DNA of 64,000 bases from Convolutriloba macropyga (lineage: Eukaryota), in the NCBI RefSeq assembly GCF_964194025.1, contig NC_134480.1, forward strand, positions 33,418,001-33,482,000. The letters are read 5' to 3'. A model generated the notes under the pieces. It did no database searches. It worked only from the letters and a program-made list of their open reading frames with translations, and had not been told where the DNA came from. A program made the position numbers and the translations under genes. Position 1 is the stretch's first letter; each line of letters begins with the position of its first letter. This document shows positions 11,576 through 50,203 of this stretch, one piece after another.

Positions 11576-12289
11576 ATGGAATTTTGTTTATATTTGACAA
11601 AAACATCCCTTTTTACAGTTATTATTTTGCAGTTTTTAAGTTCACTTTCATTAGCTTTTCCAATCGAACCACCAAAATACAATGAAACATTGGAACAGGA
11701 AGAAATGAATGCAAAACGAGTCGAGCTTGAGGAAAAATTTGGCTTCAGTTTCCAAAATTTACCGGACGAATGTATAATGTGGCTAACGTGTGAACTTCCC
11801 CAACGAACCGATTACGTCAGAAGGAAAATAAACGACCTGCCGTCTTGTCCATGCTCGTATCCAATCACGGCGATTGTTGACCCCGAACACGAGCTGCACG
11901 ACTCGGCACGAAACCAGTCGTTCAAATGGCGCGAAGCAGCTGACGTCATTGAAAATTACGGGCGAGATAGTTATGGGGTCGGGAAATGTGTTCGTTCATT
12001 TGCCTGGTACTCGGACCCGAGAAATTTGGGCTCTCGAGTTTGTTGTTACGACAGCAGTTTAAATTTGATTACACGTGGGGGCGCAGCGGGGGGTTATGAA
12101 CTCGTGTCGCCGGATCGGAACGCCGAGTATCACGAAATGCTGGATTATATGCCGTATGTTATTTGTAAAATGGATTGGCGTGCAGTGCAAACACAAATTA
12201 CCCCAAATAATGAACAGAAATGCGCCGAAAATCCGGATGATGAAACTTACAAAGCGCAAGTGAAAAAATTGGAAGAATCATTTTCATGA
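11576..12289 (+). CDS. Secreted AMOP-domain protein, isthmin-like (no TSP1 repeat), single coding exon
   Basis: Hydrophobic signal peptide. AMOP motifs LPSCPCSYP, CVRS, CCYDSSLNLITRG and LVSP. The C-terminus D.MPYVICK.DW...PNN.QKC.ENPDDE.Y..Q resembles isthmin. GC is higher than in the flanks and the 237-aa ORF is intact. Confidence 0.9.
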   Translation: MEFCLYLTKTSLFTVIILQFLSSLSLAFPIEPPKYNETLEQEEMNAKRVELEEKFGFSFQNLPDECIMWLTCELPQRTDYVRRKINDLPSCPCSYPITAIVDPEHELHDSARNQSFKWREAADVIENYGRDSYGVGKCVRSFAWYSDPRNLGSRVCCYDSSLNLITRGGAAGGYELVSPDRNAEYHEMLDYMPYVICKMDWRAVQTQITPNNEQKCAENPDDETYKAQVKKLEESFS

Positions 12290-13632: not shown

Positions 13633-15333
13633 TTCGATAATAGACTATGGAAACTAGTGTTTGATCTAAGGTATCATCTGAAAAGTAATTAATGACTTAA
13701 AAAATGTAAGTTGTTTATAATTCTGTTGATAATTGATGCAGATTTTGATGCTTCAAAAACAGTTAATTTTACAGGAAATAAAACACAAGATGTAAAAATT
13801 TCAGAACTATTGTTGAATAATGTTCTTGTCATGAACTTTCCGATTCAAATTCTTCTTCAAAATACTTTGTTTGAGATAAAAAGTTCTGCGCAATTAATAC
13901 GACAGGAGAAAAATATAGTTTGAAATTGGAATCGAATGGTTTTTATTAATAAAAACTGCCCGAGTTCTTTACAGAACTAAGTAATATGCAAACAAAGTAA
14001 TCAGGTAAAAAACAATATTTGAAACTTTGCTGAAGTGATAACTGTTTTAAAAACACAGTATGCCACATTTGTTGAACGCACTTTTGATACCCCAATTGTT
14101 TGTTATAAAGTCGTCCGCCACAATTTTTTAGGAAGCGAGTGGGGCCAGAAAAGATAACTATTCACCGTTTGGCGTGACTCAACCGCCAGTATATAACCAA
14201 TTTGGTAAGAAAACTTGAATCGCGGTGCCTTTGAAACACGTAAATTGGTGAAAATTTTTATGGATACAAACAAGCCACAGTTGGAAGAATCTGTTTAACA
14301 AATCTCAAACCTTAGTTAAACTGTCGAAAAATTTAACTAAAGAAAACATAATTCTTGTTTTTGTATGTTCAAAGATAACGGTGGTGCCATAAATATTAAT
14401 AATATGGCTCAGACAATACTATACTTCTCGTTAGTTTTTTTTGAGGAATTAATGAGCTCTTTTTTAACGAGTTTTAAAAAACAAAGGTACAGCTTTGAAA
14501 AACAAAATTTTTCCTGCAACGGTTTTTTGCCGAGTATAGCATTGCCGAGCAAGAGGGACTCAAAACTACTTTTTCCATTTGTGACGTAAAAAGAATCTGT
14601 GTTTGTATTTGGCAAAACAGAGCTCTGATACCACTGTTTGCCGTATAACTTATTAAAAAAAGAATAACGGACGAAACTTTCAAGTAACAATTTCTAGCAA
14701 GTCGTCCCTTTGATTTTTACCTCTGAAATGATCGTAATTCAAAAAAAAATCTGCAATTGTACTATATACATTTCATCAAAATAATTAAGCAACTATATTT
14801 TTTTCAGATACAATTAAATACAATCAACAAGAGTTGCGTTAAGAACAATCAAAAGTGAGATTAATTTGATTAATAAGGAATATGTGAATTATTATTTGAG
14901 AAAATGCAATGCGGTTCTTATTTTGTACTGCTAGATTGAACTAATACTTTTTGAAATACTCATCATAATAATCTTTTCGGACTAAAATTGTGTAGTAAAT
15001 TGCGGATTACTTGAAAATAGGCCAAATGTTTATGAAAAAAAAAACTATTAAATCTTGATCAATCCTCAAAAATTGCAAATTTACAAAAAACACAGCTTGT
15101 GCTTGGAATGTATCATTTTAGCAGAAATGAACTCGAAAAAAAAATTAAATATATATTCTTCCTCCTTTAATGTATTTTTAGAACAAACTTGTTTGCAGGA
15201 TATAAGTCGTGGTAACGATATCGCTTCTATTGTTCAACTAATTACTTTAGAGTAAAGTTTGTTTGCATGACAAAACTAAGACGCTTATAAAACAAATAAA
15301 AATTAGTGACAAAATTTTTGGCACCAAATAAAG

Positions 15334-15357
15334 CCCGGGTTGAGGTCGTGGAAGTAT
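15334..15357 (+). repeat. Left terminal inverted repeat
   Basis: Starts CCCGGG and matches the reverse complement of 39714-39737 at 19/24; preceded by AG. Confidence 0.65.
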
Positions 15358-15559
15358 AAACCAGACGATCCAGACACAAAACACCCATGACTCGACAGTC
15401 CAGACAATAATTGAAGTATGAATCGAAACTCCGGGAAATTGTGCGAAATTGTGCGAAATAGCGCGAACAATCAGAAATTGTTCGACAGTGGTTCGACAAA
15501 CCAGACAGTGCGAAACTGCGCGACAGTCAGTCAATAGACCAGACACTAACAGAATTATT

Positions 15560-16414
15560 AACACACTTGGACACGCAGACACGCATGACACACCACANNN
15601 NNNNNNNNNNNNNNNNNNNNNNNNNNNNNNNNNNNNNNNNNNNNNNNNNNNNNNNNNNNNNNNNNNNNNNNNNNNNNNNNNNNNNNNNNNNNNNNNNNNN
15701 NNNNNNNNNNNNNNNNNNNNNNNNNNNNNNNNNNNNNNNNNNNNNNNNNNNNNNNNNNNNNNNNNNNNNNNNNNNNNNNNNNNNNNNNNNNNNNNNNNNN
15801 NNNNNNNNNNNNNNNNNNNNNNNNNNNNNNNNNNNNNNNNNNNNNNNNNNNNNNNNNNNNNNNNNNNNNNNNNNNNNNNNNNNNNNNNNNNNNNNNNNNN
15901 NNNNNNNNNNNNNNNNNNNNNNNNNNNNNNNNNNNNNNNNNNNNNNNNNNNNNNNNNNNNNNNNNNNNNNNNNNNNNNNNNNNNNNNNNNNNNNNNNNNN
16001 NNNNNNNNNNNCACACACACGCACTCACAGACACAAACACACACACATAGACGCACACACATGCACACACGCACACGCGCGCTCACATATACACACAGGC
16101 ACACACACAGAAACACAAACACACACAAACACAGCACACACACCATNNNNNNNNNNNNNNNNNNNNNNNNNNNNNNNNNNNNNNNNNNNNNNNNNNNNNN
16201 NNNNNNNNNNNNNNNNNNNNNNNNNNNNNNNNNNNNNNNNNNNNNNNNNNNNNNNNNNNNNNNNNNNNNNNNNNNNNNNNNNNNNNNNNNNNNNNNNNNN
16301 NNNNNNNNNNNNNNNNNNNNNNNNNNNNNNNNNNNNNNNNNNNNNNNNNNNNNNNNNNNNNNNNNNNNNNNNNNNNNNNNNNNNNNNNNNNNNNNNNNNN
16401 NNNNNNNNNNNNNN
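15560..16414. repeat. Degenerate (CA)n microsatellite with N-runs at 15598-16011 and 16147-16414
   Basis: CA-rich sequence is visible between and before the N-runs. Confidence 0.9.
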
Positions 16415-17184
16415 AATTGGAACATTACTTGATACATATTGGTTTTTCTTTAATACAACTTGACAAGTTTCCGAAAAAAATATCATTTAGTTTGGATAGT
16501 TTGAGAAATTTTGGTTTTTAAGGAGCAGCTACAAAATTAAGGCCATTTTTATTATATTTGTTGATTTTTATTGTTTAAACATTATTCGAATTGTAATGGT
16601 GCGTTGTTTTTAGGGAAGTTTGACCTTGTGTGTTTTGTGTTATTTGCAGAGCAGAAAGACTTCAAAACTCATTTATTGACAGACCAAAGTTAATGGCAAA
16701 TGATGTCTTAACAATTTATACCTTAATGTTAGCGGAAAGGTTTTTTTGGCTTCAATGCAGTTTGTGGAAACTTTTGTGGAACTTTTGAATTATGCCTCAA
16801 TTTGTTGTTAACTTGTAGTCTATTGAATCAGATGTCAGCGTCGTTTCAGCGCGTTTTTTTGTAAGAAGTGCATTGATTGCAGAAAATTTTAAATTCCAAC
16901 GCATCTTCAGTTCAATTTCTTACATAACATCAGCGCCTTTTGAGTACAGTTCTAGTCAAAGTTTCGGCATTTTTTCAACGCATTTTGTACAAAATTTTAG
17001 CGCCAATTCAGCACATCCGCAAAAAAGTTTTTGCGTTTTTAAGGAACCGTAAAAACAATATAACTTCAGCGCATTTCTTACAAAGTTTTACCGCTATTTT
17101 AGCACATCCGTAGAATAATTTCAACGCTTTACAAAAATCAGAATGATTATGTTAGTAACCGGTTATTACGATTTACAATTTATT

Positions 17185-20860: not shown

Positions 20861-22606
20861 GGCAAATTCTTTCATGGGGTCAAAAAGTTGTTCAAATTGA
20901 GCCAAACTTGGCATAGAGTATCCCATGTGTATGTGGAGTGTACCACAAAAAGAACTTTTGCTATAACTTGCCTAGGAAAAAAGTTAGTATTTCATACGGA
21001 AATTTGCGAATTTCGCGAATAACGAATTTTAAAAATAGGTCTTTTTTATCGGGTCAAGGAGTTGTCCAAAGTGAACCAAACTGATATCCCAAACTCCCAA
21101 TACCATCTAAATTGTAATGCGAAAAGAATGGTCCGCCTAACGTTCCGTGAAAAAAAGTTCGTATTTCAATCGGAAATATCGACTTATTCGCTCATTATTC
21201 GCTTATTCTATTTTCAAAAATATAGAAACTTTATTGGATCAAGGAACTGTTCAAATCAGACCAAACTTGGTATGGAGTATCACCAGTGCAGTTAGAGTAT
21301 AAAACGAAAAGAATTTTTGGTATAGCTTGCGTAGGAAAAAAGTTAGCTTTTCATACGGAAATTTCCAATTATTTCGAATAACCTGCAATTATTGAATTTT
21401 AAAAATAGGTCTTTCCATGGGGTCAAGGAGTTGTCCAAATCAAACCAAACTCCGTATGGAGTATCCCCTGTGTGCCTAGAGTCTAAAACAAAAAGAGTTT
21501 TTGGTATAGCTTGCGTACGAAAAAAATTAGTTTTTCATACGGAAATTTGCGATTATTTCCATGGAAATAATCGCAAACTTCCGTATGGAAACCCAACTTT
21601 TTTCCTAGGCAAGCTGTACCAAAAATTCTTTTTGTTTTACAATCTAGGTACTCACGGTATACTCCATACCCAGTTTGGTTTGATTTGGACTACTCCTTGA
21701 CTCCATGAAAAAGACCTATTTTTAAAATTCAATAATTGCAAATTATTCGAAATAGTTGGAAATTTCCGTATGATAAGCTAATTTTTTTCCTACACCAGCT
21801 ATACCAATAATTTTTTTCGTTTTATACTCTAACTGCACTGGTGATACTCCATACTAAGATTGGTCTGATTTGAACAACTCCTTGACCCAATAAAGTTTCT
21901 ATATTTTTGAAAATAGAATAAGCGAATAATGAGCGAATAAGTCGATATTTCCGATTGAAATACGGACTTTTTTCCAAGAACGTAAGGCAGACCATTCTTT
22001 TTGCATTACAATTTAGATAGTACTGGGTGTTTGGGATATCAGTTTGGTTCACTTTGGACAACTCCTTGACCCGATGAAAAAGACCTATTTTTAAAATTCG
22101 TTATTCGCGAAATTCGCGAATTTCCGTATGAAAAACTAACTTTTTTCCTAGGCAAGCTATAGCAAAAATTCTTTTTGTGTTACACTCCACATTTGCAGGG
22201 GATACTCTATGTCAAGTTTGGATCAATTTGAACAACTTTTTGACCCCATGAAAGAATTTGCCATTTTCACTATTCCCTTTTTTCAATTGGTACCAAACGC
22301 TCATTCGGTTATAGTTTCCCGAAGAGCAAACCAAAATCGTTCATCATGGTCTTAGAAGTTTGATACGATGATATTGTAACTCATAATAATCGGTTTTTAA
22401 CATAAACACTCTGATAAAAAAATTAAAGATCGAGCTGTGAGCATGTGGTCATTTCCGGACGTTTGGGGTCGAAAATCGTTAATAACTTCTGAAATACTGT
22501 ACCAATCAAAACGAGACATAGCTAATTAGATTGCACTTGAAACGGACTTTAAAACTATATATACCATGATTAGTTTCCTTCAAGTACTTAGGAAATCAAA
22601 GCCGAT
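20514..22606. repeat. ~2.1-kb spacerless inverted repeat centred at 21561/21562
   Basis: Centre GCGATTATTTCCA|TGGAAATAATCGC. The arms can be followed out to ATCGGCT (20514) and its complement ending at 22606. Confidence 0.9.
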
Positions 22607-22920
22607 TTCAAACGCATTTGAAACGGAACTTTTTGAACTTGGCGAATAACGAATTTTAAGTATAGTTCTTTTTGATTGAGTCATAGAGTTATCGAAATCA
22701 AACTAAACTTGTCATGGAGTATCACCTGTGTAGGTAGAGTGTAGGAAGAGAAGAATTTTTTCTTTAGATTGTCTAGGAAAAAAATTAGTTTTCCATACGG
22801 AAACTTGCAAATTTCGCGATCAGCGAATTTTAAAAATAGGTCTTTTTCATCGGGCCAAAGAGTTGTCCAAAGTGAACCAAATTAATATCACAAAATCCCA
22901 GTACTATCTAAATTGTAAAG
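20860..22920. repeat. ~175-bp satellite family, left cluster (both orientations)
   Basis: Unit GGGTCAAGGAGTTGTCCAAA...CCAAACT...AGCTTGCCTAGGAAAAAAGTTAG...CATACGGAAATTTGCGA; same family as 35960-38870. Confidence 0.85.
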
Positions 22921-23130: not shown

Positions 23131-23799
23131 ATGAACCCAAAAAGAATTGGCGAACCCTTTGCTAGTAACCCTGATGTTGCGCAACGAAAGAGGTTTAAAG
23201 AAACTTTCTCGGCTCAGCAGTTACAAGGGCGTATCAAGAAAGAGACCGTCAGGGGGAAGAGTAGAGAGTTCCTTTACACAAATTTTGTAAATGAAGTTGC
23301 CGTCGAAACTGCACTAGTTGGCGATTCAATCGTGGACAACATTTGCTTAAATGGTTGTTCCACCTTCTCGTTATCAGGAGGCGTTGTGAATGACTTCTAC
23401 GACCTGCTACCGACCATGAAGTCTTACGGGAAGATAATTCTTTCCTTAGGTGGTAACAATCTCTCGAGATATAACGGACCTGGAGAAGAGCCAGAGTCAG
23501 TATTGGCACAAATAAAGGATCTGGTGGATGCCTTCGCTAAACTTGAAAATCAGCCAAGAGTTGTCGTGTGCACAGTATTACGGAGAACAAGAGCCAATCA
23601 TTCTTACATTAAGACTTTCAATGATATACTAGTAAATTCAGAGCTGTCAGTTTTCAATTTGCATCGACAAGTCTACAAGAACAGAAATTTCCTGGAAGAT
23701 GGGATTCATCTGACTTTACGAGGGAGGAAAACCTACGCTTGTGGCATGAAAAAATTGCGAAAAGAAAAGTTTGGTGACGACGATAGCTTCCGCAATTGA
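23131..23799 (+). CDS. SGNH/GDSL hydrolase-fold protein (LINE ORF1 esterase / OSK-like)
   Basis: All four blocks in order: LVGDS, SGG, LSLGGNN, DGIHL. Intact 222-aa ORF. Confidence 0.85.
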   Translation: MNPKRIGEPFASNPDVAQRKRFKETFSAQQLQGRIKKETVRGKSREFLYTNFVNEVAVETALVGDSIVDNICLNGCSTFSLSGGVVNDFYDLLPTMKSYGKIILSLGGNNLSRYNGPGEEPESVLAQIKDLVDAFAKLENQPRVVVCTVLRRTRANHSYIKTFNDILVNSELSVFNLHRQVYKNRNFLEDGIHLTLRGRKTYACGMKKLRKEKFGDDDSFRN

Positions 23800-24029: not shown

Positions 24030-25010
24030 ATCTGTTGAATCCCTTAAATAACTGCCAGGAGAGTTTGTTGCTTTCCTGTGCAGTTAAACTTTAGAACTTT
24101 CAGCAAATAGAATCTTCAACTTTATTGTAATTTTTGATGTTTTTAAAAGTGCTAAGAGATTGTGTTGCTTTCCGGCACAATTAAATGTAGTTACTGATGT
24201 TTTTAAAAGTGCTAGGAGAGTGTTGCATTCCGTCAGTTGAATCTCTCAAATAACTGCCTGGAGAATGTGTTGCTTTCCCGTGCAGTTAAACGTTAAAACC
24301 TTCAGCAAATAGAATCTTCAACTTTATTGTAATTTTTGATGTTTTTTAAAAGTGCTAAGAGAGTGTGTTGCTTTCCGGCACAATTAAATGTAGTTACTGA
24401 TGTTTTTAAAAATGCTAGGACAGTGTGTTGCATTCCGTCTGTTGAGTTCCTCAAATAACTGCCTGGAGAGTGTATTGCTTTCCTGTGCATTTGAATTTTA
24501 GAACTTTCAGCAAATGGAATCTTCAGTTTTATTGTAATTTTTGATGTTTTTAAAAGTGCTAAGAGAGTGTGTTGCTTTCCGGCACAATTACATGTAATTA
24601 CTGATGTTTTTAAAAGAGCTAGGAGAGTGTGTTGCATTCCGTCAGTTGAATCTCTCAAATAACTGCCTGGAGAGTGTGTTGCTTTCCGGTGCAGTTAAAC
24701 GTTAGAACCTTCAGCAAATAGAATCCTCAGTTTTATTGTAATCTTTGATGTTTTTAAAAGTGCTAAGAGAGTGTGTTGCTTTCCGGCACAATTAAATGTA
24801 GTTACTGATGTTTTTAAAATTGCTAGGACAGTGTGTTGCATTCCGTCAGTTGAGTTCCTCAAATAACTGCCTGGAGAGTGTGTTGCTTTCCTGTGCAGTT
24901 AAATTTCAGAACCTTCAGCAAATGGAATCTTCAGCTTTATTGTAAATTTTGTTTTTTTATAAGTGCTAAGAGAGTGTGTTGCTTTCCAGCACAACTAAAT
25001 GTAGTTACTG
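24030..25010. repeat. ~204-bp tandem repeat, about 4.8 copies, with 3 GTGTTGC(T/A)TTCC motifs per unit
   Basis: ACTGCC anchor at 24051, 24253, 24458, 24662 and 24866. Confidence 0.9.
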
Positions 25011-25103
25011 ATTGATGATGTGTTAAATTTTTTGCTCTTAAAAAGTTCTAAATAAGTTCCTTAGAGTATTATGTCTAGCCAAGTTTTCTGGCTTTTCATT
25101 TCA

Positions 25104-26563
25104 ATGAACAATGACGATGTTCAACTTCTCTCAGAAAGTTCCAAGCTTTGNNNNNNNNNNNNNNNNNNNNNNNNNNNNNNNNNNNNNNNNNNNNNNNNNN
25201 NNNNNNNNNNNNNNNNNNNNNNNNNNNNNNNNNNNNNNNNNNNNNNNNNNNNNNNNNNNNNNNNNNNNNNNNNNNNNNNNNNNNNNNNNNNNNNNNNNNN
25301 NNNNNNNNNNNNNNNNNNNNNNNNNNNNNNNNNNNNNNNNNNNNNNNNNNTGCATGTATTTTTCTTCAAAAAGTGTTTCGCGTTTTTAGTTGAAATGACT
25401 GTTGTCGTTTCTCTTTCGATATACACAAACATAACACACTTTCTTGCGGGTTATTAAAAATTTTAGGATCAAGAAACATTTAATATAACTATGGCAATAA
25501 AATTGTGGTTTGATTTAGTGTTGTGAAGACCACCAAAAGCTTACAGAGGCTCTTCTTCAGAATGAGGAAAAAGTGCGTCAAATGGGATTGATTCTAGAGG
25601 ACATGGGCAACGAGTATGCATCAAAAATTATGGAAATGAAGCAAAAGATCTCCAGTATTGTAAGTTTAACCCTTGTTCAGGATATTGCTAGCAACATTTT
25701 ATAACTCCACAACTACGCCGGAGTTTTTTACTTGAAAATTTTGCAAATTTTTCGTGTTTATTTTTTGAGGGATGTTTTTTCCAGCAAAACGCTAACATTT
25801 TTGTCACTGATTTGGATCAGTACTAAAGGTTCTTTTGTGTTGAGTTTTTCAATGCCCTTACCAACACTTTTTCGTCATTTCCCAAGACTTTTTTAATTAA
25901 TAGGTGAGCAAGACAATTAAGGATTTGGAACCAGAAAGACTCGCCCTGTCCGAAGATACAATTCTTGAGGACAATGTCGAAAATTTCCAGGAGATTGAAG
26001 AGACACCAGAAGTGCAATATGGTCTTGATAACAGGAATTTAGATCATATATATAAAGGACATAATCCTGCCCACTATGGTTTGCATTTGAGAAGGTGGAT
26101 TTTTGGAGAAAATGGGTTGTCAACTGACATGATTACTCCTCAACGCACAATGGCATCGGGACGAGCCGCAGCAGACTCCGAACTCGTTCTGAAGTTCTTT
26201 AGTAATTTTTAGTCACTTCAATTTTAGCCATATGCCAAATAAAAGTAAACGGTTTAACCGAAATTCTTGTTTATAAGAAAAAACTTCGAGGGCTTTTTTG
26301 AGATTAAGTTTTCGCAAAAAAGTAAAGATTCTTATTTTTGGTGCTCAACCGTATTTATGTCCCTTTTTGCTTTAGGATCAGTTCAAAGAAAATTTCCCAG
26401 AAGAAAGCAACCCCTGGCTGCGAAAAAGGCTAGAGCAGCTGCAAATAAGGCGGGACTAAACGTCAAAGACCGATTGGCAGGAACAGGGAAATACAGTGCT
26501 GGAGCGAAGGAAATCAGAAAAGCTCAACTTAAGAAAAAGCATGAGTCAATTCAATCAGAATAG
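25104..26563 (+). CDS. Spliced coiled-coil + BEN-like domain protein A (exons: 25104-gap, 25519-25659, 25904-26201, 26376-26563)
   Basis: GT-AG introns with compatible phases give ...HYGLHLRRWIFGENGLSTDMI...ADSELVLKFF/RSVQRKFP...AKKARAAANKAG, clearly paralogous to protein B. The first exon runs into the 200-N gap, so the start is uncertain. Confidence 0.65.
25151..25350. other. Assembly gap (exactly 200 N)
   Basis: N-run of round length, probably a scaffold join. Confidence 0.9.
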
Positions 26564-26869
26564 TTTGTTCTGCTATTTGTTCAATTGTCGAATTCTTTGT
26601 CTTAAAGTTTGCATTCTTAAAAGTTTACATAAATTTTCCTGTCAGATATAATTAGTTTTGCAAAAAAAAGGTTCGCCCAAGGCTTTTTTGAGTCTTGTTT
26701 TGCTTGATAATTTCTCGCTCGATTTTGTTAGTTCTTCTGACTTTATTCTATAAGATGTGTTGTTTGTAGAGAATTAAATTTTTTTCGAGTGTCCAATTTT
26801 TCTTTGCAGATTTATTAAGAGAATAAGAAGAGATTTAAATTTCTTGTCTTTGTTGCCGTAGGTTTGAGC

Positions 26870-27440
26870 ATCAGCAATTTTTTTTATAAAAAAAGAGTGA
26901 GGCTTATAATAGGGAAAGCAATACTGAATTCTAAAGTTATGATTTAAAGAAATGATAACAATGCTAAATATGTGATTTGCCTTCCGAAAGAATTCGTAAA
27001 TTTTATAATAAGTGCTTTTCTTCATAAATATCTTTTTGGCTTGGGTAAGTGTAAAGCTAAGTTTCTAAATTCCGAAATGGTTAGGAGGGCGTGTTGCCTT
27101 CCGATTTATTAGAAGAGAGTGAGGCACATAATAGGGAAAGCAAAAGCTTAGCAAGAGCCCAAAGTCTTTATTGAATTTCAAAGCTTTTTTAAAGAAATCT
27201 TAACAATGCTAAATATGTGATTTGCCTTCCAAACGAAATCGTAATTTTTATAATTTTAAGTGCTTTTCTACATAAATATCTTTTTGGCTCGGGTAAGTGT
27301 AAAGCTAAGTTTCCAAATTCTGAAATGGTTAGGAGGGCGTGTTGCCTTCCGACTGATATAAATTTTCGATTTCTTGTTAGAATTAACTCGAGGCTTGATC
27401 GGAATTTTTTTGATGGTGCTATTTGGGTGTGTTGCCTTCT
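26870..27440. repeat. ~245-bp direct duplication carrying GGAGGGCGTGTTGCCTTCC motifs
   Basis: ~26945-27105 matches ~27190-27352; a third motif copy lies at ~27426. Confidence 0.8.
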
Positions 27441-27568
27441 AGCACTTTGCGTTGATTTCAATCTATTTCTCGCTGCGGTTGCTACAACGTGAGCGTTGTT
27501 CTTGAAAACGTTTGCGAGTGAAATGAACAGTTTTTGTAAAATAAACTCTGCTCTTCAGTGATTGAAAA

Positions 27569-29384
27569 ATGGCAACTCGAACGTCTAGTAAGGGCAGGAA
27601 GATAGTGAAGCCCACAAACTTCAGCACTGACAGTGAAGTTGAGTTGCAGGAAACAGCCCAAAGTCAAATGCGAGACAGCAGATTTCTGTTTTATTATGGC
27701 AAAAATGCGTTCTCAACTGCCCTGAATTCATCGAGCTGGCCACAGGGGACTTCCTGGAAATATAAATTAAGTCTGGAGCTAGGTCAAACATATCCAATGA
27801 TTCACAATGAAACTCAACCAGAATGCATCTATCTCGGAAAAGGTTCACAATCTGAAATATCACGTCATAAACTTGTTGTTTTGGCTCAATTGAAAAAAGG
27901 AGAACCTCCAAGCTTCGTTCCGGAGACAATTCTTCGTGACAACAGAGATGAGGAGGTCATTTCAGAAGATTGCGAAACTCCTCTTCATTCCCCTCTTACG
28001 CAGCATGTGTCCCAGGCTGCGGGGTCAACATCTCTGATAGTTAACTATAAGGCAACGAAGACTGCCGAAATAGAGAGCGCCAAAAATAAAAGTTCGTCAT
28101 GTGAGCAGTTTCAACTTTTTTTTGCGGAAAATCAATCAAGGATGGCACGGGCCGAATCCAGTTTCGAGAAAATTAAGAAGCAATCAGATCGCCGCAAGAG
28201 GAAGCTGGTGAACGAGTTCAATGATTCGGTAGTATCTGTTTGCAGTTTTTTGAAATTAATGTCTAGACAAAATAAAAATCTAAGGCAGTCGCTGCTTCGT
28301 TGCTTGAAAAATTGAACAAGAAAAAATGGCCGGCAAAATTGCACAAAATCTTTCATGTTTCAACTTCTGAAGCTAGGTTTCTAATGAAAATTGTATTAAA
28401 ATATTTTGGTTACAAAATTCTACAATTTTGCTTCTTTTTTGACTCTACGTCTTTTTTAGACAATACGTATTTATGACACTAAAGACGTTCTGTAAATTCA
28501 GTAAAAAAGACTATTTTCTTGGTTGTTTTCTAGCGCTCTGAATTTCATATCAAAATGATACTAACATTTAAAAGCGTTTTGTTTAGCTGGAGGAGTTAGA
28601 GGAGTGCGTGAGAATCCAAAAGTTTGGGTTTGAGAGTGTCGATCAAAATCCGCATCTTCTTGAAACGTTCCCCGGTGTCCGTGTTATGAAAGGAGATGTT
28701 GATTTGATGCAAATTGAAGCCAATGAATTTCCTAGCAGGCTAGGACGAGCCCTTCGCAAGGAAATTTTTAGACAAAATGGACTCGTTGAAACAATGATTG
28801 GCGCTGAGCATTCAACTAGAAAAGAGGCAAAGGGCTCTGATGTTAAGCGGTTTTTTGGTTAGATTTTTAAGAGCAACAATTATGATCAACATTAGGGTTT
28901 TGTTAACGGGTTTTGTATTTTAAATATAACGTTTGTTTTTTAAATATATAAAGTCTTAATAAATTAGATAATGGAAAGAAAGATGAGTGACAATCAACAT
29001 ATGCTCTAAAAATCTCCTGCCACTACTGGAGGAAAAGATAAATGTTTATTGTTTTGCTTAGGGTATTAAACGTTTCATAAACTAACCAACTTTGTCATGT
29101 TTATCTTTTGTAAGGTTCTTCAAATTCTTAGATTAGAGCAAATATAGTAATTGTTTAAATAGGCGCTGTGCTGATAAAGGTATAGAGTTGTCGACATTCT
29201 TTAAAATGCTTTAGAAGTTATCAACGGTAAGTATCCGCTTACTCCCCGATTGGCATTCAAACTGGCAAAGGATGCAGCCAATCAAGCGGGAAGAGAAGTG
29301 AAAAGCTATCGATCACAACTTGTTCATGAAGAGAGAAACAGCACAGAAAATGAAATAGACAACAGAGGAGAACCTATCAATTGA
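27569..29384 (+). CDS. Spliced coiled-coil + BEN-like domain protein B (exons 27569-28228, 28587-28857, 29215-29384)
   Basis: Phase-0 intron with a TACTAAC branch site (28559-65), then a phase-1 intron. The product SRLGRALRKEIFRQNGLVETMIG...DVKRFF/EVINGKYP..DW..KLAKDAANQAGR fits the BEN helical pattern (L...lF....L....G ... V...fP...W......N.k.R). Confidence 0.7.
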
Positions 29385-29744
29385 AAATGTGCCATACTAC
29401 TGAGTTAGCAAATAGAAAAAAACAAACAGGTGCTCATGTCAAGCAGCAATGATTCTAAATAGTTTTAGAATTTTATAGTGAATTCTTTCACCCCCCCCTT
29501 CTTATTAAAGCTATGTTAGTTTTGATTACAACCCGTTTTGGTTTAGTAGCGATTGTTAACTGCTTGTTAAACAATAGTTTGAAAAATCAGTTCATCTTAA
29601 ATTGCCACTGCATCTCTTGTGCCGCTAAATTTAATCGATACTATTGAATCGAACTGAACACAATGTTTGATAACGCTCAAAAATAAAGTTTTGAAACAAC
29701 TTTTTCCTATTGCATTGTGATTTTTTGTTAAATTAGTGCGCTGC

Positions 29745-31230
29745 TATGAGGGTGTAATTCTCCCTGATACCAATGAGATATGTTACTGCTTTGCTCTGAC
29801 AGTTATGTTGCTAAGAAATATGAAATTGATATTCGGTTGTGTTGCCATCAAGAACAAATCAATGAAAAAGGTCTAGGTGAAGATTTAATAGCAATATTTT
29901 TTACGTGGAGTTTGCGCAGTGCTCCGAGGGTGTGTTGCTCTCTGGTACTAATGAGATAATTTAAAGGTGACCGCTTACAAGCAGCATAGGTTTTGTTTAA
30001 AATAGTGAGAAGGCTATGAGGGCGTGTTGCCTCGAGCAGAAATAAACGAGAAACTATTAGGTGAAGATTTAAAGGCGGGTGATTAAGTGTGATTTTTTTC
30101 CTGTGCTACGAGGGCGTGTTGCCTTCTGGTACTAAGGAGAAATGTCGCAGGTTTGTGCAGAGACAGTGTGTAATATTGAAAAATTCGGGATGCTATGATG
30201 ATGTTGCCTTCTAGAGAAAGTAAATGAAAACTTCTAGCTGAAGAAATAATAGCGAGGTGCTTTTGTAAAATTTGTGCAGTGCTACCAGTATCTGTTTGCC
30301 TCTTGCACCAATGCGATTTTTTACTGGTTTTGCGCTAACAGTCAGAGTTTGTTGTGTTTGAGTGCCATGAGGGTGTGTTGCTCTCTGGTACTAAAGAGAG
30401 AATTTAAATGTGACCACTTAAAGGGAGCATAAGTCTTGTTTAGAATAGTGAGAAGGCTGTGAGGGCGTGTTGCCTCGCAGAAATAAACGAGAAATTATTA
30501 GATGAAGATTTAAAAGCGCGTGATTGATTGTGATTTTATCCTTTGCTACGAGGGCGTGTTGCCTTCTGGTACTAAGGAGAAATGTCGCAGGTTTGTGCAG
30601 AGACAGTGTGTAATATTGAAAAATTCGGGATGCTATGATGATGTTGCCTTCTAGAGAAAGTAAATGAAAACTTCTAGCTGAAGAAATAATAGCAAGGTGC
30701 TTTTGTAAAATTTGTGCAGTGCTACCAGTATCTGTTTGCCTCTTGCACCAATGCGATTTTTTACTGGTTTTGCGCTAACAGTCAGAGTTTGTTGTGTTTG
30801 AGTGCCATGAGGGTGTGTTGCTCTCTGGTACTAAAGAGAGATTTTAAATGTGACCGCTTAAAGGGAGCATAAGTCTTGTTTAGAATAGTGAGAAGGCTGC
30901 GAGGGCGTGTTGCCTCGCAGAAATAAACGAGAAACTATTAGGTGAAGATTTAAAGGCGCGTGATTTATTGTGATTTTATCCTTTGCTACGAGGGCGTGTT
31001 GCCTTCTGGCTGGTACTAAGGAGAAATATCGCAGGTTTGTGCAAAGAGACAGTGTTATTTTGAAAAAAATTTGAGTTGCTCTGAGGATGTTGCCTTCTAG
31101 AGAAAGTAATTGAATTTTCCTTGGTGAAGAGTTAAAAGCTAGGTGCTTTGGTAAAATTTGTGCAGTGCTACGAATATCTGTTCCCCTCTTGTACCAATGA
31201 GAGTTTTTTTACTGGTTTTGCGCTTCACCA
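29745..31230. repeat. ~440-bp tandem repeat, about 3.3 copies, rich in GAGGG(C/T)GTGTTGC
   Basis: GCTACGAGGGCGTGTTGCCTTCTGG at 30105, 30545 and 30985. The array ends just before the SET-transposase ATG. Confidence 0.9.
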
Positions 31231-31252
31231 AAAGTTTAGGTTCCAGTTAGCA

Positions 31253-34206
31253 ATGAGTGAGTGCGAAAACCTAGCGCAAATCGAAGGACAACTGTCTGAA
31301 AAATTGTTGAAAGATTTCCCGAATTCACCAAAACTTTTGACTGTGCTATGGAGTAAGGATGATTTTGAATTAAAACTGCGCAATGACCGAAAGCTGAAAA
31401 AACTGTTTATGGATATGAGCGAATCATACAAAGCTGCTATGGATTTTGGACTGAGTATTGAACCAGACAAATACGGAGGATTTTGCTTGGTGAATCGGTC
31501 GATGAGCGCCATCAAGCCTGGTGAAATTGAGGTGGCCGTTGGATTGTTAGCTAACCTGCCAAAAGAAAACTCGTATAAAGACTGGTCAGTTATGGAAGGA
31601 GGAAAACTCCTAGTTGGAGTGGCTAGGTGGGCTAATCATTCCTGTAAAGCTAATTGCGACTACTACATGAAAGGTGGTTATCGTGGACGACAATGTGTTA
31701 GGTTGAGAGCGCTGAAGCAAATAGAAGACAATGAAGAGCTGACAACCTTCTACAACGAAGACGCTTTTGGAGAAGAAAATGTCGATTGTCTTTGCAGTCA
31801 TACAGAAGAGCATGGAAGGAGTGCAAATTTAGTGCAATCAACTTCACAAACTGTAGTGAGAGCTGTAAAACGAAAACGTCTACCAAAAGCAGAAATTCGA
31901 TATGCACAACAAGCAACAGAGTTTGATTCTTTCTTTGCTTATTACGAAGACTCATCGAATTTTAGCCTGTCCTCATTAAATGAAGCGCCCTCTTTTCCTA
32001 TAGAAACTTCCCCAAACAATACTGCGGTTCCTCAAATCATCACATCAGATTCTATTGACGACGAAATGGGCAGCAGTAATGGAACAACTGACGAGTCATT
32101 GAACAACGCTCAATTTCAATTTTTCCCCGAGTATGAAAGCGATGAAAGTTCACAGTCTGACACCGAAGCTGTAAGGGAACTTGCCTCATTCAATCGATCT
32201 TCTCTATGTGATTTTGTGAGTGACTGCAGACCAGTCTCTGTGTCAAATCTAGCTTTTTCCATCATGTCGTTAGTAATAAAGCATAATTGTTCTGACCAAA
32301 TGATGTACGAACTTCTAAAACGCGATCAAATTATTTTAAATGGTGAAAGTTTAGCACCATGGACAATACAAAAGAAGTTGGGTGAATTTGCCGCTCAATA
32401 TCAATGTAGAAAAGAACTTTTGTCGAACGGTGAACAAATTTATCTCAATTTCAGTCCGCTTCTTCTGAAAATTGTTCAAAATTCGATCAACGGCATGTTG
32501 AGATACGCAGAGTTGAGAAAAACAACAAACGATATAATTATGCCTAAACTGGAAGTTATTGAACGGCAAGTGACAATTAGGTTAATTTTGAACTTGGACG
32601 GAGCCCTGGTCTCAAAATCTCCTCCTAAAACAGCCTGGCCGCTCCTGATAGCGATTGCCGATCTACCTCCGAAAAAACGACAGATGTTTCAAAACATAAT
32701 TTTAGGATCTCTTTTTGTTGGAAACGGGACACCGAATTTTGACGACGTTTTTGATCATTTCGAGCGACAGATATCTACACATGAGGAGGTAACACTGGAT
32801 GGTGATCGAGTTAAGGTTAAGTTCGAGCCAATCTTTTTTGTAGCAGATTTAATTGGCAAAGCAAAAGTATTGAATATCAAACAATGCAACGGATATTATG
32901 GTTGCTCTCTCTGCACTCAGCGTGGCTTCCACATGGATGGAGCGCATCACTATCCACATGACTTTGATGTTCATAAAAATATGCGGTCTCCTGAAAGTTA
33001 TCTGGAGAACTTGAAGAACCTGGATGAGGGATCTCAACAAAAACTCAAAACCCTCAACGGTAAAAAGAGTGATTTTGAAAAATTCACTCAAGGAGTAAAG
33101 GGCAGGAGCAAAATTTTTTCTGTTATCGCTAATCAGCCGCTCTCTTCGCCGGTTGATACAATGCATCAACTTTTTCTTGGCGTATCGAGGGACCTACTAA
33201 CGTATTTTTACGACCGCATGAAAGCAGACAGTAAAAGAAAATTGAATAAAATACTTTCGGGTATTCAAACTCCAAGAGAAATGAAACGATCAGTGCGATC
33301 TTTCGATCATCTCGCAAATATGAAAGCCAGCGAGCTAAAAGTTTATTTGCTATATCTGGCGTCCATCGTCTTACCCATTTTTTGTTTGGAGAAGACCGGA
33401 GGTCCGATAAAACGGATCTTTTTAAACTAGTTTTTTCTTTGCGCAGTTTATATGATGACAATCGAAACTCTAAATTTTGCAGACTTTTGTTAGACGAGTT
33501 TTGCGTCAGCATGGCTGAAAAAAATCCCAAGAAGTTCGAGTCGATCAATTTCCATCTATTGAGACATCTTGCTTGGCAAGCTGCTGAGATTGGTCCTCTC
33601 TTCGTTACTTCAGCATCAATGTTTGAATCGGCTCTTCACCTTCTGATTGCTCCGTTAACTGGAACAACAAACCACTGTAAACTAATGGTAGAGAGATTCA
33701 TCAGAGGCAAAGTGGTTTCTGAGATAGATTATAGTGAAGATGATTTGGCGCAGTTTCTAAGGTTTTCTGACAATCCGTCGGATGTGAACGAAGAATTTGG
33801 CCTCGTAGAATCAGAAGAATTAAGAGAATTCAGGTTCAACAATCCGTCAGCTCGAGTGTTCTGTCGATTCAGGAAGAATTTTTATTTTGGCTCTTTAGCG
33901 TACGGGCGGGAATCAGGTGCAGATATTTTTGCATGTGTAGACGCGTCAACAATGGCTATTGGGAAAATTCTTTTCTTCTATGAGCTGGATGGTGAATTTT
34001 GTGTGCTTCGTGAACAAAAAATTGTTTCAACATTTAAACTTGTTCAACAACCAGAAGGTCCGGTTTCTTATTTTGCATACGTCGTTGAAGACAAGAATAG
34101 CACAATTCATGTTGCAGTAGATGCATTAGAAATAAAGTTTTTTCCTGTAAAAATTGAGGACAATTTGTATCTTGTTCCACTACTCAGTAACTTTGAGCAT
34201 GATTAA
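31253..34206 (+). CDS. SET domain (Suv4-20/KMT5-like) fused to a CMC-EnSpm/CACTA DDE transposase; ~984 aa if the 1-nt frameshift at 33378-33383 is corrected
   Basis: SET: DWSVM...GVARWANHSC..NC...LRALKQIEDNEELTTFY...FGEENVDCLC. Transposase: LNLDG...AWPL...DLPPKKR..N, FVADL, NGYYGCSLC, DTMHQLFLGV, KASELK, NFHLLRHL...GPL...SASMFES. The two ORFs (to 33430, and 33382-34206) are joined by adding one T to a T6 run. Confidence 0.9.
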
Positions 34207-34542
34207 TTTTTAGTTTTCAGTTTCAATTTTGATTATAGCTACGCTGTTGATTCATTAACGTATGATCTGTTATTGTCATTGTATATTTTGAAAACAATCA
34301 ATTTGCAAAACTCGATATATTGAAAACAATCAATTTGCAAAACAATCGATATTTTGAATAGTAATTTTGCTGCATGACTTTTTAACGTATTGCTTGTTTT
34401 ATTTTATTGACATAAATTTTAAACAATTATTTTGCGAAACTTAGTTGAAAACAAAGTCATCTTGCAGAACGCAGGCAAATTCCAATCTCTTTACATTATT
34501 TTTCTTTTGCTTGTTCTAAAAATTTGCATCCTTCCAGACGTA

Positions 34543-34821
34543 ATGAGGCAAACAATTTTGAGTTTTGAGAACAACCGTTTGATTTATCGAATACAACCTG
34601 CTGACATAGCTGATAATGTCGAATCAAGTGAAGTTGACTTGCTCAGGAGTCAGATCTTTGCTTTGGAGGAAAAGGTTGCTCTCCTTACGAAAAGAGTAGA
34701 AGACCTGGAACGTCTTCGACCTGTTGAGATAATCGATTTGACACAAGATGAAAGTTTCACAACAACTGTTTCGGTGTCGTCTAACCAAAGCGATGATATA
34801 GAGATGAATGGACTTTTTTGA
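34543..34821 (+). CDS. Small coiled-coil protein with a SUMO-interacting-like motif (VEIIDLTQDE)
   Basis: ATG at 34543, heptad leucines LRSQIFALEEKVALLTKRVEDLE, then IIDLT and an acidic/Ser tail. Coding-like composition. Confidence 0.55.
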   Translation: MRQTILSFENNRLIYRIQPADIADNVESSEVDLLRSQIFALEEKVALLTKRVEDLERLRPVEIIDLTQDESFTTTVSVSSNQSDDIEMNGLF

Positions 34822-35264
34822 GCCGGGCAGGATCTTAAGCTTTTAAATAGCACGATAGTTTCTGGTTTTCTCTAGTAAAATGTTCAAGCTGGTTCTTTTA
34901 GATTTTTGAATTGTTCAAATGTAGTTTGTTTTCTACTTAATTGTATTAAAGATTTGATACCCCTGCTTTTTTGATGCTGAATTGAACTTGATTTTTTGCT
35001 TTTCCAACTGGCTAACAATTTATACATATTATAAATCGAGGACAAGCTTGTGTTTTACTAATTTTTCGAGGAGGTTCGGAGGGTGTATTGCCTTCTGCCG
35101 CAAAAGTATCACTTTCATTCCATAATTTTCTATTTTGCTTCAAGCTTTTTTCGTTTATACCTTGACATAGACTGGAGGGTGTGTTGCCTTCCGGCTAATG
35201 TTATGACATTGCTCATAAGTTGTACTTTTTTTCTAATGATCACGAAAATTTTTAGTTTCTCGAA

Positions 35265-35570
35265 ATGAGTTCCCAGCTACTGATCAGCGTACCGGGGACA
35301 TTAGTGATGGGATCTTTTGTAGTACTCAGATTTGTGGTAATTTTCGAGACCGCAGTTTTGACAACGTGGCAGCCAATACAAATGGTTCAAATGATCCTTT
35401 TGAATGACGGAGTTGAGCATACATTATCTTTGACCCCAAATACCCCAGAATTTGAGTCCTTTATGGCATGGGTTACTGAAGTTGAAATGAGCGACGAGCA
35501 GGAGCAAGCTTTGTATCCTCTGATTGCGGTTCTTGGAGACTACTACGGTTCCTCTGATAGCGAACACTGA
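35265..35570 (+). CDS. Hypothetical 101-aa acidic protein
   Basis: ATG-initiated ORF with GC above the flanks, same strand as the other cargo genes, preceded by two copies of the shared motif. No family recognised. Confidence 0.4.
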   Translation: MSSQLLISVPGTLVMGSFVVLRFVVIFETAVLTTWQPIQMVQMILLNDGVEHTLSLTPNTPEFESFMAWVTEVEMSDEQEQALYPLIAVLGDYYGSSDSEH

Positions 35571-35959
35571 CTACTATTTCGATCAGATCTACAGTGCTAA
35601 ATTTTAATTGTTTGCTCATGATAACAAACTTTCTTAGGCTGTGCTTATTTCGAACAATTTTTTTAAAAATGTGCTAAGTTTTTACTCTGTTTTATGTTTG
35701 TGATAAAGGAACTAATTTCTCTCAATTAATGCGCAATTAAAAACTTCGATGTTTTATGTTTATGATAAAGAAACCAATTGAAAGCTTGTCTTCTTTCTTG
35801 TTTTTCATGCATTTAGTGAGTGTGGTTAATATGAGTGTCAGTATTATCCAATAAAACTTTTAGTCTGATGCGAAATATAGGCTGAAAGAATATTAACTCT
35901 AGTTATTAACTCTAGAATTTTAGGCTGAACGAATATTAACTCTAGTTATTAACTCTAGA

Positions 35960-49055: not shown

Positions 49056-49943
49056 TGTTTGGGCCTATCTTATGTTATCAATATAATATTCAACTAAGTT
49101 TTAAGGCCGCCCTCTTCGCGTTATAAATTTCTCTCTCAATTGAGAAAGAATAGACAGGACTGTTTTATGAGACGGTTAATTTCTTGTTTTATTGTCCAAT
49201 ACAAGTTATAAAGGCATAAAATATAAAGTTAAACAAAGCGTGCGTAATATTTAAATAGATATATGTTCACTAATTATCAATGAAAGCAAAACCAAATCAT
49301 ATTTATAAATGGTACATAAACTTCACAGCTTTTATGGTAAGAATCAACAGAATCAATTTTTAGTTTAACTGCCTTTCCGTTTTCTTAATCAAATGCAATT
49401 TTTCGTACAGGAAACATAATTACTTGAATAAATTTACTACCGGCAAATAAATGAAGAAAGTGTATGTAAAGTGACCAAATATGATTGAAATAGATCAAAT
49501 AGCACTATAATAGCTGCGATTTGAGTACACAATCAATAAACAAGTACAATTAGTGTAATATGAACTAAATAACACATTTTCACATTTTCAGCTATGTGCA
49601 AATTAGGGCTAAAATATAAGGTTTTTTGGCAATAACTCATAAACTAAAAAAGATATCAATATCAAATTTTGTGAGTCGATAGACATTGTTAAGATACACA
49701 TTGTGAGTGAAAATGAAGGTTCTATTGCAAAGCGATAAAGTGCGGCTCCCTTATAAATTCTATAAGCAATCTTAATACATGGGGAAAATTTTCAAATGTA
49801 AATAGCTCTCACACTAATGATTCAAAATAGAGGAAACTTGGCAGTGACTAGCACTAGTCTACGATATAGCATATGAAAAAAAGATTAACTAAATCGGACA
49901 TTTAGTTTTTGAGATAATGAGATTTAAATGTCAGGCCGCAACA
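49056..49943 (-). repeat. BEL/Pao 5' LTR, copy 1
   Basis: Homologous to 42251-43131; followed by TSD ACGGG. Confidence 0.92.
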
Positions 49944-50203
49944 ACGGGCTTTTTAATGATACCACTCACAACTCTATACTATGAAAATATCGATCGGTTA
50001 AAATTGTCTGAACAAAAAACCCAGTTGAGTATATAGTTCCTCCTCCAACAAGAGGGGTCGGAACAACAATTTCTGACGCTTGAAAGCAAAATTTCTTAAG
50101 TTGTCTTCCTGGTTTTCGTTAGTTTCTGGAGTATCAGTGTCACTGAAAAATCCAAATGTTTTTTAAAGAAAATTGATAACGACCCATTCAACCTAAAATT
50201 TGG

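Follow-up and report, generated by a model that had tools for sequence, protein, structure and literature searches.

The 64,000-nt stretch of Convolutriloba macropyga contig NC_134480.1 analysed here (positions 33,418,001 to 33,482,000; hereafter the window, in whose own numbering all positions are given) carries at 31253-34206 a recently decayed copy of a transposase gene, which belongs to a multi-copy, multi-gene animal DNA transposon and in which a SET module of the histone-methyltransferase type precedes the transposase. An open frame runs from 31148 to 33430 on the + strand; its predicted biological start is the ATG at 31253, the start common to all paralogs. From this ATG onward the frame encodes first a SET domain, next a linker rich in Ser and acidic residues, and then the first two of the catalytic Asp motifs of the CMC type (CACTA/EnSpm, Mirage, Chapaev), and the strings IEVAVGLLANL, DWSVM, GVARWANHSC and EELTTFYNEDAFGEENVDCLC are all present in it. 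An earlier sequence-only reading, which had placed these three parts in one uninterrupted frame, is borne out by the open reading frame (ORF), by the strings it had quoted and by the Pfam SET match.

The same reading had extended over the span 31253-34206; its description holds for the frame to 33430, but the whole span is not a single frame, since a 1-bp deletion has shifted the C-terminal 274 amino acids (aa) of the transposase into a second ORF (33382-34206), which aligns to the last 270 residues of intact paralogs. When the window coding sequence (CDS) is aligned with that of the intact copy L005 (product P0058), this single deletion falls at CDS nt 2126, in a T-run at 33377-33382 that has six T in the window versus seven in intact copies; the frame is shifted at codon 709 and reaches a stop at 33428-33430. 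The SET domain, the linker, both Asp motifs and the C(2)C and DxMH motifs are retained in the uninterrupted frame, and the H(3)H motif and the putative catalytic Glu fall past the break. The window CDS also differs from L005 by 12 substitutions, 10 of them non-synonymous and two synonymous, as expected under neutral decay of inserted copies. Intact copies of 984-1003 aa, 99.6% identical, are found elsewhere in the same genome.

Other fused copies and relatives were sought, and many copies as well as distant relatives were found to keep the fusion. A protein search returned 15 relatives, 11 of which retain the SET part (36-47% identical to the window protein; some uninterrupted, at 975-984 aa). 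Clusters formed at 90% identity have 28-106 member ORFs each, about one third of the listed members being full length; for each subfamily, intact copies number in the dozens and fragmentary ORFs in the hundreds, and the CDSs of L005 and L007, which lie at different loci, are identical from the second ATG on. The transposon family is alive, or was so very recently.

The fusion extends well beyond these close relatives. A HMMER search of 1.84 billion representatives with a full-length profile gave 6722 matches at E <= 1e-3, and the best 150 of these 6722 include many full-length proteins that are less than 50% identical to each other. Nine such proteins were scanned; eight carry Pfam SET together with Transposase_21 or DUF1258, and the ninth was found by the SET hidden Markov model of the family. 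The layout of SET, linker and transposase is present in at least 12 protein lineages less than 50% identical to each other, drawn from two ENA assemblies, one NCBI genome (GCA_013332895.1) and Logan runs. A distant member from the same assembly as the window family, P0127 (L013 3001-6021), has a SET region only about 18% identical to the window protein, with motifs nearer to canonical Suv4-20 (NDFSLI, LGPISFVNHSC). In the tree of transposase cores, SET-bearing proteins stand on either side of the deepest split; the rows without a SET part are for the most part short ORF calls that may be truncated. Judged by sequence divergence, the fusion is old and is carried by many deeply diverged transposon lineages.

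The SET part was compared with known classes by sequence, profile and structure. Pfam SET matches residues 110-168 (E 1.5e-8; 35.4 bits, cut-off 22.4). In a single-sequence search of the PDB, the best matches are SUV420H2 and SUV420H1 (E 3.5e-10 to 1e-8), followed by NSD2 at 7.9e-5, and the KMT5 strings given in the sequence-only reading agree with the PDB alignments. When 32 diverged SET regions of the family were combined into a profile, SUV420H1/H2 were matched at E 9e-29 to 6e-27 (98-104 bits); the nearest other classes, KMT2C, NSD1-3, ASH1L and KMT2A, stayed at or below 49 bits, with a best E of 5e-12. The AlphaFold2 (AF2) model of window residues 1-216, based on the 32-sequence alignment, has a mean predicted local distance difference test score (pLDDT) of 90.2 and a predicted template modelling score (pTM) of 0.82; three helices (residues 3-18, 35-44 and 46-65; pLDDT >94) are followed by the SET beta fold. 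When this model was searched against the PDB with Foldseek, the top 15 matches were all SUV420H1/H2, at query TM-scores (TMq) of 0.58-0.70 over 207-262 columns; MLL, SET7/9, SETD8 and vSET reached TMq of about 0.4 over 105-180 columns. Among Swiss-Prot models, the top 25 matches comprised only KMT5B, KMT5C, fungal Set9 and fly and worm Suv4-20, with a sharp drop thereafter. The KMT5B/C/Set9 matches span query residues 1 to about 205 (TMq 0.58-0.72) and include the N-terminal helical bundle. Membership of the SET part in the Suv4-20/KMT5/Set9-like class is well supported by the alignments and the structure model, in agreement with the resemblance to KMT5B/C proposed at the outset.

Several residues of the substrate and cofactor sites of this class are conserved in the transposon family. 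In the HMMER alignment to mouse Suv4-20h2 (4au7), Ser112 corresponds to Ser161 and Tyr167 to Tyr217; in Suv4-20h2, Ser161 forms a hydrogen bond with the substrate Lys, and Tyr217 is part of the lining of the Lys channel (Southall et al., PMC3874154). Among the 32 diverged sequences, Ser112 is invariant and Tyr167 nearly so; N128 and C131, the Asn and Cys of the cofactor-side NHxC motif, and C179 and C181, the first two post-SET Cys of the zinc site, are invariant as well. Retention of the specificity Ser, of NHxC in the window copy and of the catalytic Tyr had been noted from the letters of the window, and the wider alignment agrees for the Ser, the Tyr and the Asn and Cys of NHxC.

Word-indexed searches with the SET part returned the family itself and one protein of the aphid Myzus persicae. 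This protein, P0256 (L012, LXJY01002191.1, 4161-5269), is named 'histone-lysine N-methyltransferase set9-like, partial' at NCBI, a name that agrees with the KMT5/Set9 class call; it matches the SET profile of the family at E 1.5e-24, is closest to the P0127-type transposon SETs (NDFSLI, LGPISFVNHSC, CLCDLC) and sits at the end of a 5.3-kb contig.

For the transposase part, alignment of 30 diverged relatives identified columns that are invariant in 28-30 of them (P0004 numbering): D451-G452, D534, A537-K538, C553-x-x-C556, D635-x-M-H638, H767-x-x-x-H771 and F790-E791. This D, D, C(2)C, H(3)H, E pattern is the published catalytic signature of the CMC(T) transposases (PMC12730594), which places the family in the CMC clade. 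Transposase_21 and DUF1258 match the window protein and its close paralogs at 13.8-24.8 bits, under the Pfam cut-off; diverged fusion relatives exceed it (P0082, Transposase_21, 42 bits; P0088 and P0093, DUF1258, 45 and 51 bits), and in a language-model comparison the transposase part neighbours clusters of Transposase_21, DUF1258 and Plavaka. The initial assignment to EnSpm/CACTA stands as far as the clade is concerned, but is too narrow, since the right end of the element reads ...CCCCGGG and not ...TG or ...TAGTG; the transposase is best described as a predicted CMC transposase by its catalytic signature, and EnSpm/CACTA specifically is not endorsed.

Between subfamilies, synonymous differences (pS) are saturated at 0.73-0.86, and non-synonymous differences (pN) amount to 0.18-0.35 in the SET part, 0.16-0.36 in the transposase and 0.35-0.59, the highest values, in the linker. 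Since pN of the SET part is about that of the transposase, the SET module is as constrained as the catalytic core, and evolution between lineages is not neutral. Although the linker is of low complexity and evolves rapidly, it is open in the coding frame: in six diverged families (136-194 codons), there are no stops in the coding frame versus 3-24 in the other five frames, which argues for one polypeptide, and none of 2000 shuffles was free of stops. Chance continuity of the ORF was rejected on the shuffles and on the recurrence of the layout in at least 12 lineages. The linker also contains a conserved basic patch, KRKRLPK (31868-31888), which looks like a nuclear localisation signal. The intact protein of 984-1003 aa is accordingly predicted to be a single polypeptide in which a disordered linker, acidic, rich in Ser and bearing a basic patch, joins an N-terminal KMT5-type module to a CMC transposase of the DDE type.

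Table 1. Features of the SET-transposase gene and of the surrounding mobile element in the window.
Feature	Positions	Strand	Landmarks or content	Evidence
SET-transposase ORF, first part (aa 1-710)	31253..33382	+		ORF list; alignment to intact paralogs P0004, P0005
N-terminal helical bundle (aa 1-65), as in Suv4-20/KMT5	31253..31447	+		AF2 model, structural matches
SET core and post-SET Cys/His cluster (aa 66-185)	31448..31807	+	DWSVM 31580-31594 (Ser112); RWANHSC 31625-31645; ANCDYY 31649-31666 (Tyr137 at Suv4-20h2 Phe191 position); TTFYNEDAFGEEN 31742-31780 (Tyr167); DCLCSH 31784-31801	Pfam SET; PDB sequence/profile alignments; invariant columns
Acidic/Ser-Thr-rich low-complexity linker (aa 186-331)	31808..32245	+		Alignment to paralogs
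Transposase body, first part	32246..33382	+	LNLDGA 32588-32605 (first Asp, D449); FVADLIG 32837-32857 (second Asp, D532); C(2)C as CSLC 32903-32914; DxMH 33155-33169	Columns invariant in 28-30/30 diverged relatives
T-run with inactivating 1-bp deletion	33377..33382	+		Alignment to L005
Transposase C-terminal part, shifted frame	33385..34206	+	NFHLLRH 33547-33567 (H(3)H); MFES 33619-33630 (putative catalytic Glu); conserved ...FEHD then stop	ORF list; alignment to P0004, P0005
Minimum mobile unit	25584..39737	+	ORF248 27569-28315; SET-transposase; ORF129 34432-34821; ORF101 35265-35570; 174-bp satellite array ~36200-38870; 21/42-bp subterminal repeats 39204-39646	blastn of L005-L008, L002 vs window; Tandem Repeats Finder (TRF) for array and repeats
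440-bp tandem array (2.9 copies) directly upstream of ORF	29926..31224	+	9 x motif GAGGGYGTGTTGC	TRF, motif scan
Right terminus ...GACGACGTTTTGTCGAGTCATAATTCTACCACCTCGCCCCGGG, variable-length C-run before it	39694..39737	+		Copies compared

The gene is part of a larger mobile unit (Table 1). In blastn, the window shares 95-98% identity with copies L005-L008 and L002, at the furthest from 25584 on the left and exactly to 39737 on the right, where the final bases ...CTACCACCTCGCCCCGGG are followed by five unrelated flanks (window, L002, L005, L007, L008); one right end with five different flanks indicates that a unit of at least 14 kb was inserted at different sites. A C-run at 39685-39693, 44 nt inside the right terminus, varies in length, with six C in the window and 7-12 in L005, L007 and L008; in L002 (about 8300-8335) it comprises approximately 32 C. 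On the left, the mobile unit probably extends to at least 23131. All public contigs with the window subfamily (L005-L008, L002, L011; ENA ERZ25071359) break 0-5.7 kb upstream of the gene, in tandem arrays, and the left part of the element is systematically missing from their assembly; the five contigs of this subfamily taken up in the search for the left end are no exception. The window itself is interrupted by an N gap at 25151-25350. Exact and 3-mismatch searches with the right terminus or the subterminal repeats in reverse complement gave no match on the left; the last 867 bp found nothing in word-7 blastn against the window, so that no inverted copy of the right terminus is present in it. 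A k-mer scan for inverted repeats in the window, L001, L003, L004, L009 and L010 turned up chance pairs only, either AT-rich or poly-C.

Satellite arrays of 174-185 bp at 20870-22900 and 36200-38870 are mutually inverted, the left one palindromic and the right one a 13-copy array. They were considered as terminal inverted repeats and rejected, since the true right end lies 870 bp further out. At 70-80% identity, the satellite accompanies other subfamilies whose transposases are about 45% identical (L001 1947-5600; L003 13735-17100); either the subfamilies share subterminal arrays, or the satellite is genome-wide. The 440-bp array directly upstream of the ORF also occurs in copies L005-L008 and may be a promoter, regulatory or binding-site array of the element. 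Its motif GAGGGYGTGTTGC has 28 matches in the window (24059-35187) versus 0.84 expected, all on the + strand, in groups at 24059-24982, 27085-27435, 29926-31002 and 35079-35187; these groups lie in otherwise dissimilar arrays, each just upstream of an ORF of the element, and by this distribution the motif looks like an element-specific regulatory or binding motif.

The elements are multi-gene, since homologs of the accessory ORFs lie beside the SET-transposase genes of other subfamilies; ORF248 and ORF129 have homologs of 32-37% identity there, and the SGNH/GDSL-like ORF at 23131-23799 has a weak homolog in L003. Over these three ORFs, the homologs (L004 4119-4463 and 1998-2252; L001 7902-8201; L003 2336-2767) are 26-37% identical. 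ORF129 is coiled-coil-like; Pfam matched none of the three except for a weak GDSL match of the SGNH-like ORF, and an exact-protein look-up with this upstream SGNH-like ORF gave no match.

Outside the element, remnants of BEL/Pao-type long terminal repeat retrotransposons lie at 43166-55685 on the - strand, with DUF5641 and DUF1759 gag-like ORFs and two copies of the integrase core (rve; 43166-43981 and 50096-50707); the right flank of the element is thus in a region rich in transposable elements. An ORF at 11576-12289 (+), probably an exon of a host gene, encodes an AMOP domain (Pfam E 4e-8), which animal proteins carry extracellularly; with the BEL/Pao remnants, it marks the content of the window as animal-type. 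The long 'ORFs' at 15247-16486 were rejected as genes; they are masking artefacts that run through N-masked positions 15598-16011 and 16147-16414.

The two halves of the protein can each be compared with a known system. With Suv4-20/KMT5B, KMT5C and fungal Set9, the transposon module shares its best profile and structural match over the entire length, N-terminal helical bundle included, as well as the equivalents of Ser161 and Tyr217, the NHxC motif and the first post-SET Cys pair. It differs from them by a sequence identity of only about 20-25%, by Tyr in place of Phe191 and by a His as the predicted last zinc ligand; it is also without the long C-terminal heterochromatin-targeting region and instead forms the N-terminus of a transposase. 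With the CMC transposases, the family shares the catalytic signature, relatives that exceed the Pfam cut-off, and a large multi-gene element with subterminal repeats; it differs in its right end and in its N-terminal SET module, which was not found among the described families.

Transposons carry chromatin readers (chromodomains) and occasionally genes for writers or erasers; in fungal elements, TET/JBP is usually a separate gene. SETMAR/Metnase likewise unites an N-terminal SET domain and a C-terminal DDE/D transposase in one polypeptide. SETMAR, however, occurs in a single copy, as a domesticated host gene of primates; its SET belongs to another class and its Hsmar1 transposase is of the Tc1/mariner type, whereas the fusion described here is multi-copy and recently mobile and combines a KMT5-type SET with a CMC-type transposase. 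The sequence-only reading had already set SETMAR apart as a host gene with a mariner transposase and a different SET class. HarbingerS and MuDR transposons of oomycetes carry SET histone methyltransferase genes (Kojima and Jurka 2014, cited in PMC12730594); by that account they are also DNA transposons with an acquired SET-domain lysine methyltransferase, but of other superfamilies and in other hosts. KDZ, Plavaka and EnSpm transposons of fungi carry TET/JBP genes (PMC12730594) and are comparable as CMC-related and other DNA transposons with an enzyme that acts on epigenetic marks; that enzyme is a DNA-base dioxygenase, whereas here a methyltransferase of the histone type is fused to the transposase. 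No fusion of KMT5/Suv4-20 to a CMC transposase was found in the literature, in a search that did not extend to Repbase Reports, where an earlier description is possible.

As to function, we lean slightly towards the view that the SET module is an active or substrate-binding lysine methyltransferase which the transposase carries to chromatin, where it would engage Lys20 of histone H4 (H4K20) and couple transposition to a local mark. The transposase, bound at the element ends or at the target, would bring the SET module to a neighbouring nucleosome; the module would engage the H4 tail and either methylate Lys20 or hold H4K20me1 as its substrate, and cut-and-paste transposition would thereby be coupled to the local chromatin mark. 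Because H4K20me2 is the mark bound by 53BP1, such a mark could help the break made on excision or integration to be repaired; alternatively, it could steer insertions to, or tag insertions in, H4K20-methylated chromatin. Selection for the SET module would in this scheme act on the transposon and not on the host. The further-reaching version, an active transposase with its own histone writer that, during transposition, gives donor or target sites a mark of heterochromatin or one that recruits repair, is possible but somewhat doubtful.

Several observations weigh against the coupling of an active KMT5-type module to a CMC transposase. The Phe191 of the methyl pocket is replaced by Tyr137 in the window protein and by Tyr in most subfamilies, only a few having Phe, and the F-to-Y change at the equivalent position in Suv4-20h1 reduces activity dramatically (PMC3874154). 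In several subfamilies, NHxC has Ser in place of its His, and the post-SET motif of the window subfamily is CLCSH...H (CxCxH...H) and not CxCxxC, the form of KMT5 that other subfamilies (P0088, P0086, P0091, P0120) keep; the last zinc ligand of the window subfamily is probably His. Within subfamilies, amino-acid differences are spread evenly across domains, and constraint is visible only between lineages. The full-length structure model is poor (pLDDT 40) and yields neither evidence on the transposase fold nor a domain arrangement. The right terminus ...ACCTCGCCCCGGG-3', as seen in five copies, departs from the 5'-CA..TG-3' ends that, with target-site duplications of 2-5 bp, characterize CMC-type lineages in most cases (PMC12730594), and from the CACTA...TAGTG ends of EnSpm; the left end and the target-site duplication of the element were not found. 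Unlike the class call, the assumption that the transposon SET module has the same activity as KMT5B/C is not supported by these sequence comparisons.

The substitutions in the active site bear on the main alternative, in which the SET module is catalytically inert and serves as a chromatin tether that binds the H4 tail or the nucleosome surface and thereby selects targets or holds the transposase in place. Chromodomains, which tether the integrases of chromoviruses, offer a comparison. The change from Phe191 to Tyr, which cripples Suv4-20h1, the loss of the NHxC His in several subfamilies and the non-canonical post-SET ligands of the window subfamily would all be accommodated, and strong conservation is equally expected of a binding module; yet Ser112, Tyr167 and N128/C131 are invariant or nearly so across lineages that are only 18-30% identical in this region, which is more than pure binding needs, and we regard an inert tether as unlikely. 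The same Tyr137 can be read in another way: the active site departs from KMT5B/C at a pocket residue, and the element has several conserved accessory ORFs, as would suit an active SET module whose relevant substrate is not H4K20 but its own transposase, one of the accessory proteins or a host factor of repair or silencing. Against this, the architecture specific to Suv4-20 is preserved as a whole, with both the N-terminal bundle and, along the H4K20 channel, the tetrapeptide FS(V/L)M, and a substrate other than H4K20 seems improbable.

Two further alternatives concern the nature of the gene and not the activity of its product. The long ORF might not be translated as one protein if an intron or an alternative start separated the SET part from the transposase, in a case of gene capture with co-transcription; the low-complexity, fast-evolving linker would be the natural place for such a split, but its selective openness in the coding frame of six families, the failure of all shuffles to remain stop-free, the conserved basic patch within it and the continuity of the frame in at least 12 lineages make a split product very improbable. 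The idea of a domesticated host gene, for which SET-transposase host fusions such as SETMAR are a precedent, was rejected, since several observations contradict it: every subfamily has fragments in the hundreds and intact copies by the dozen, the same CDS is found at more than one locus, copies that end in one terminus sit in different flanks, the catalytic DDE residues are fully kept, and broken copies decay neutrally (10 non-synonymous to two synonymous changes, plus a frameshift).

The coupling of a KMT5-type module to transposition is the reading that we slightly favour. What sets this case apart is a histone-methyltransferase-type module of a defined class, KMT5/Suv4-20, that lies covalently within a transposase and has been kept by selection across deep diversification. 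For annotation, fragments of such elements can carry the name 'set9-like histone methyltransferase' in public genomes, as does the one aphid protein, which suggests that elements of this kind are hidden in public annotations. If the module is active, the DNA breakage of transposition would be tied directly to an H4K20-type mark of break repair and heterochromatin, a SETMAR-like layout would be useful to a transposon and not to a host alone, and the element would provide compact natural parts for chromatin-aware genome engineering. If the SET module is indeed a writer, the family would represent a transposon-selected natural counterpart of SETMAR, maintained in many lineages of animal CMC elements, and a system in which writer-coupled transposition and chromatin-directed target choice could be studied.

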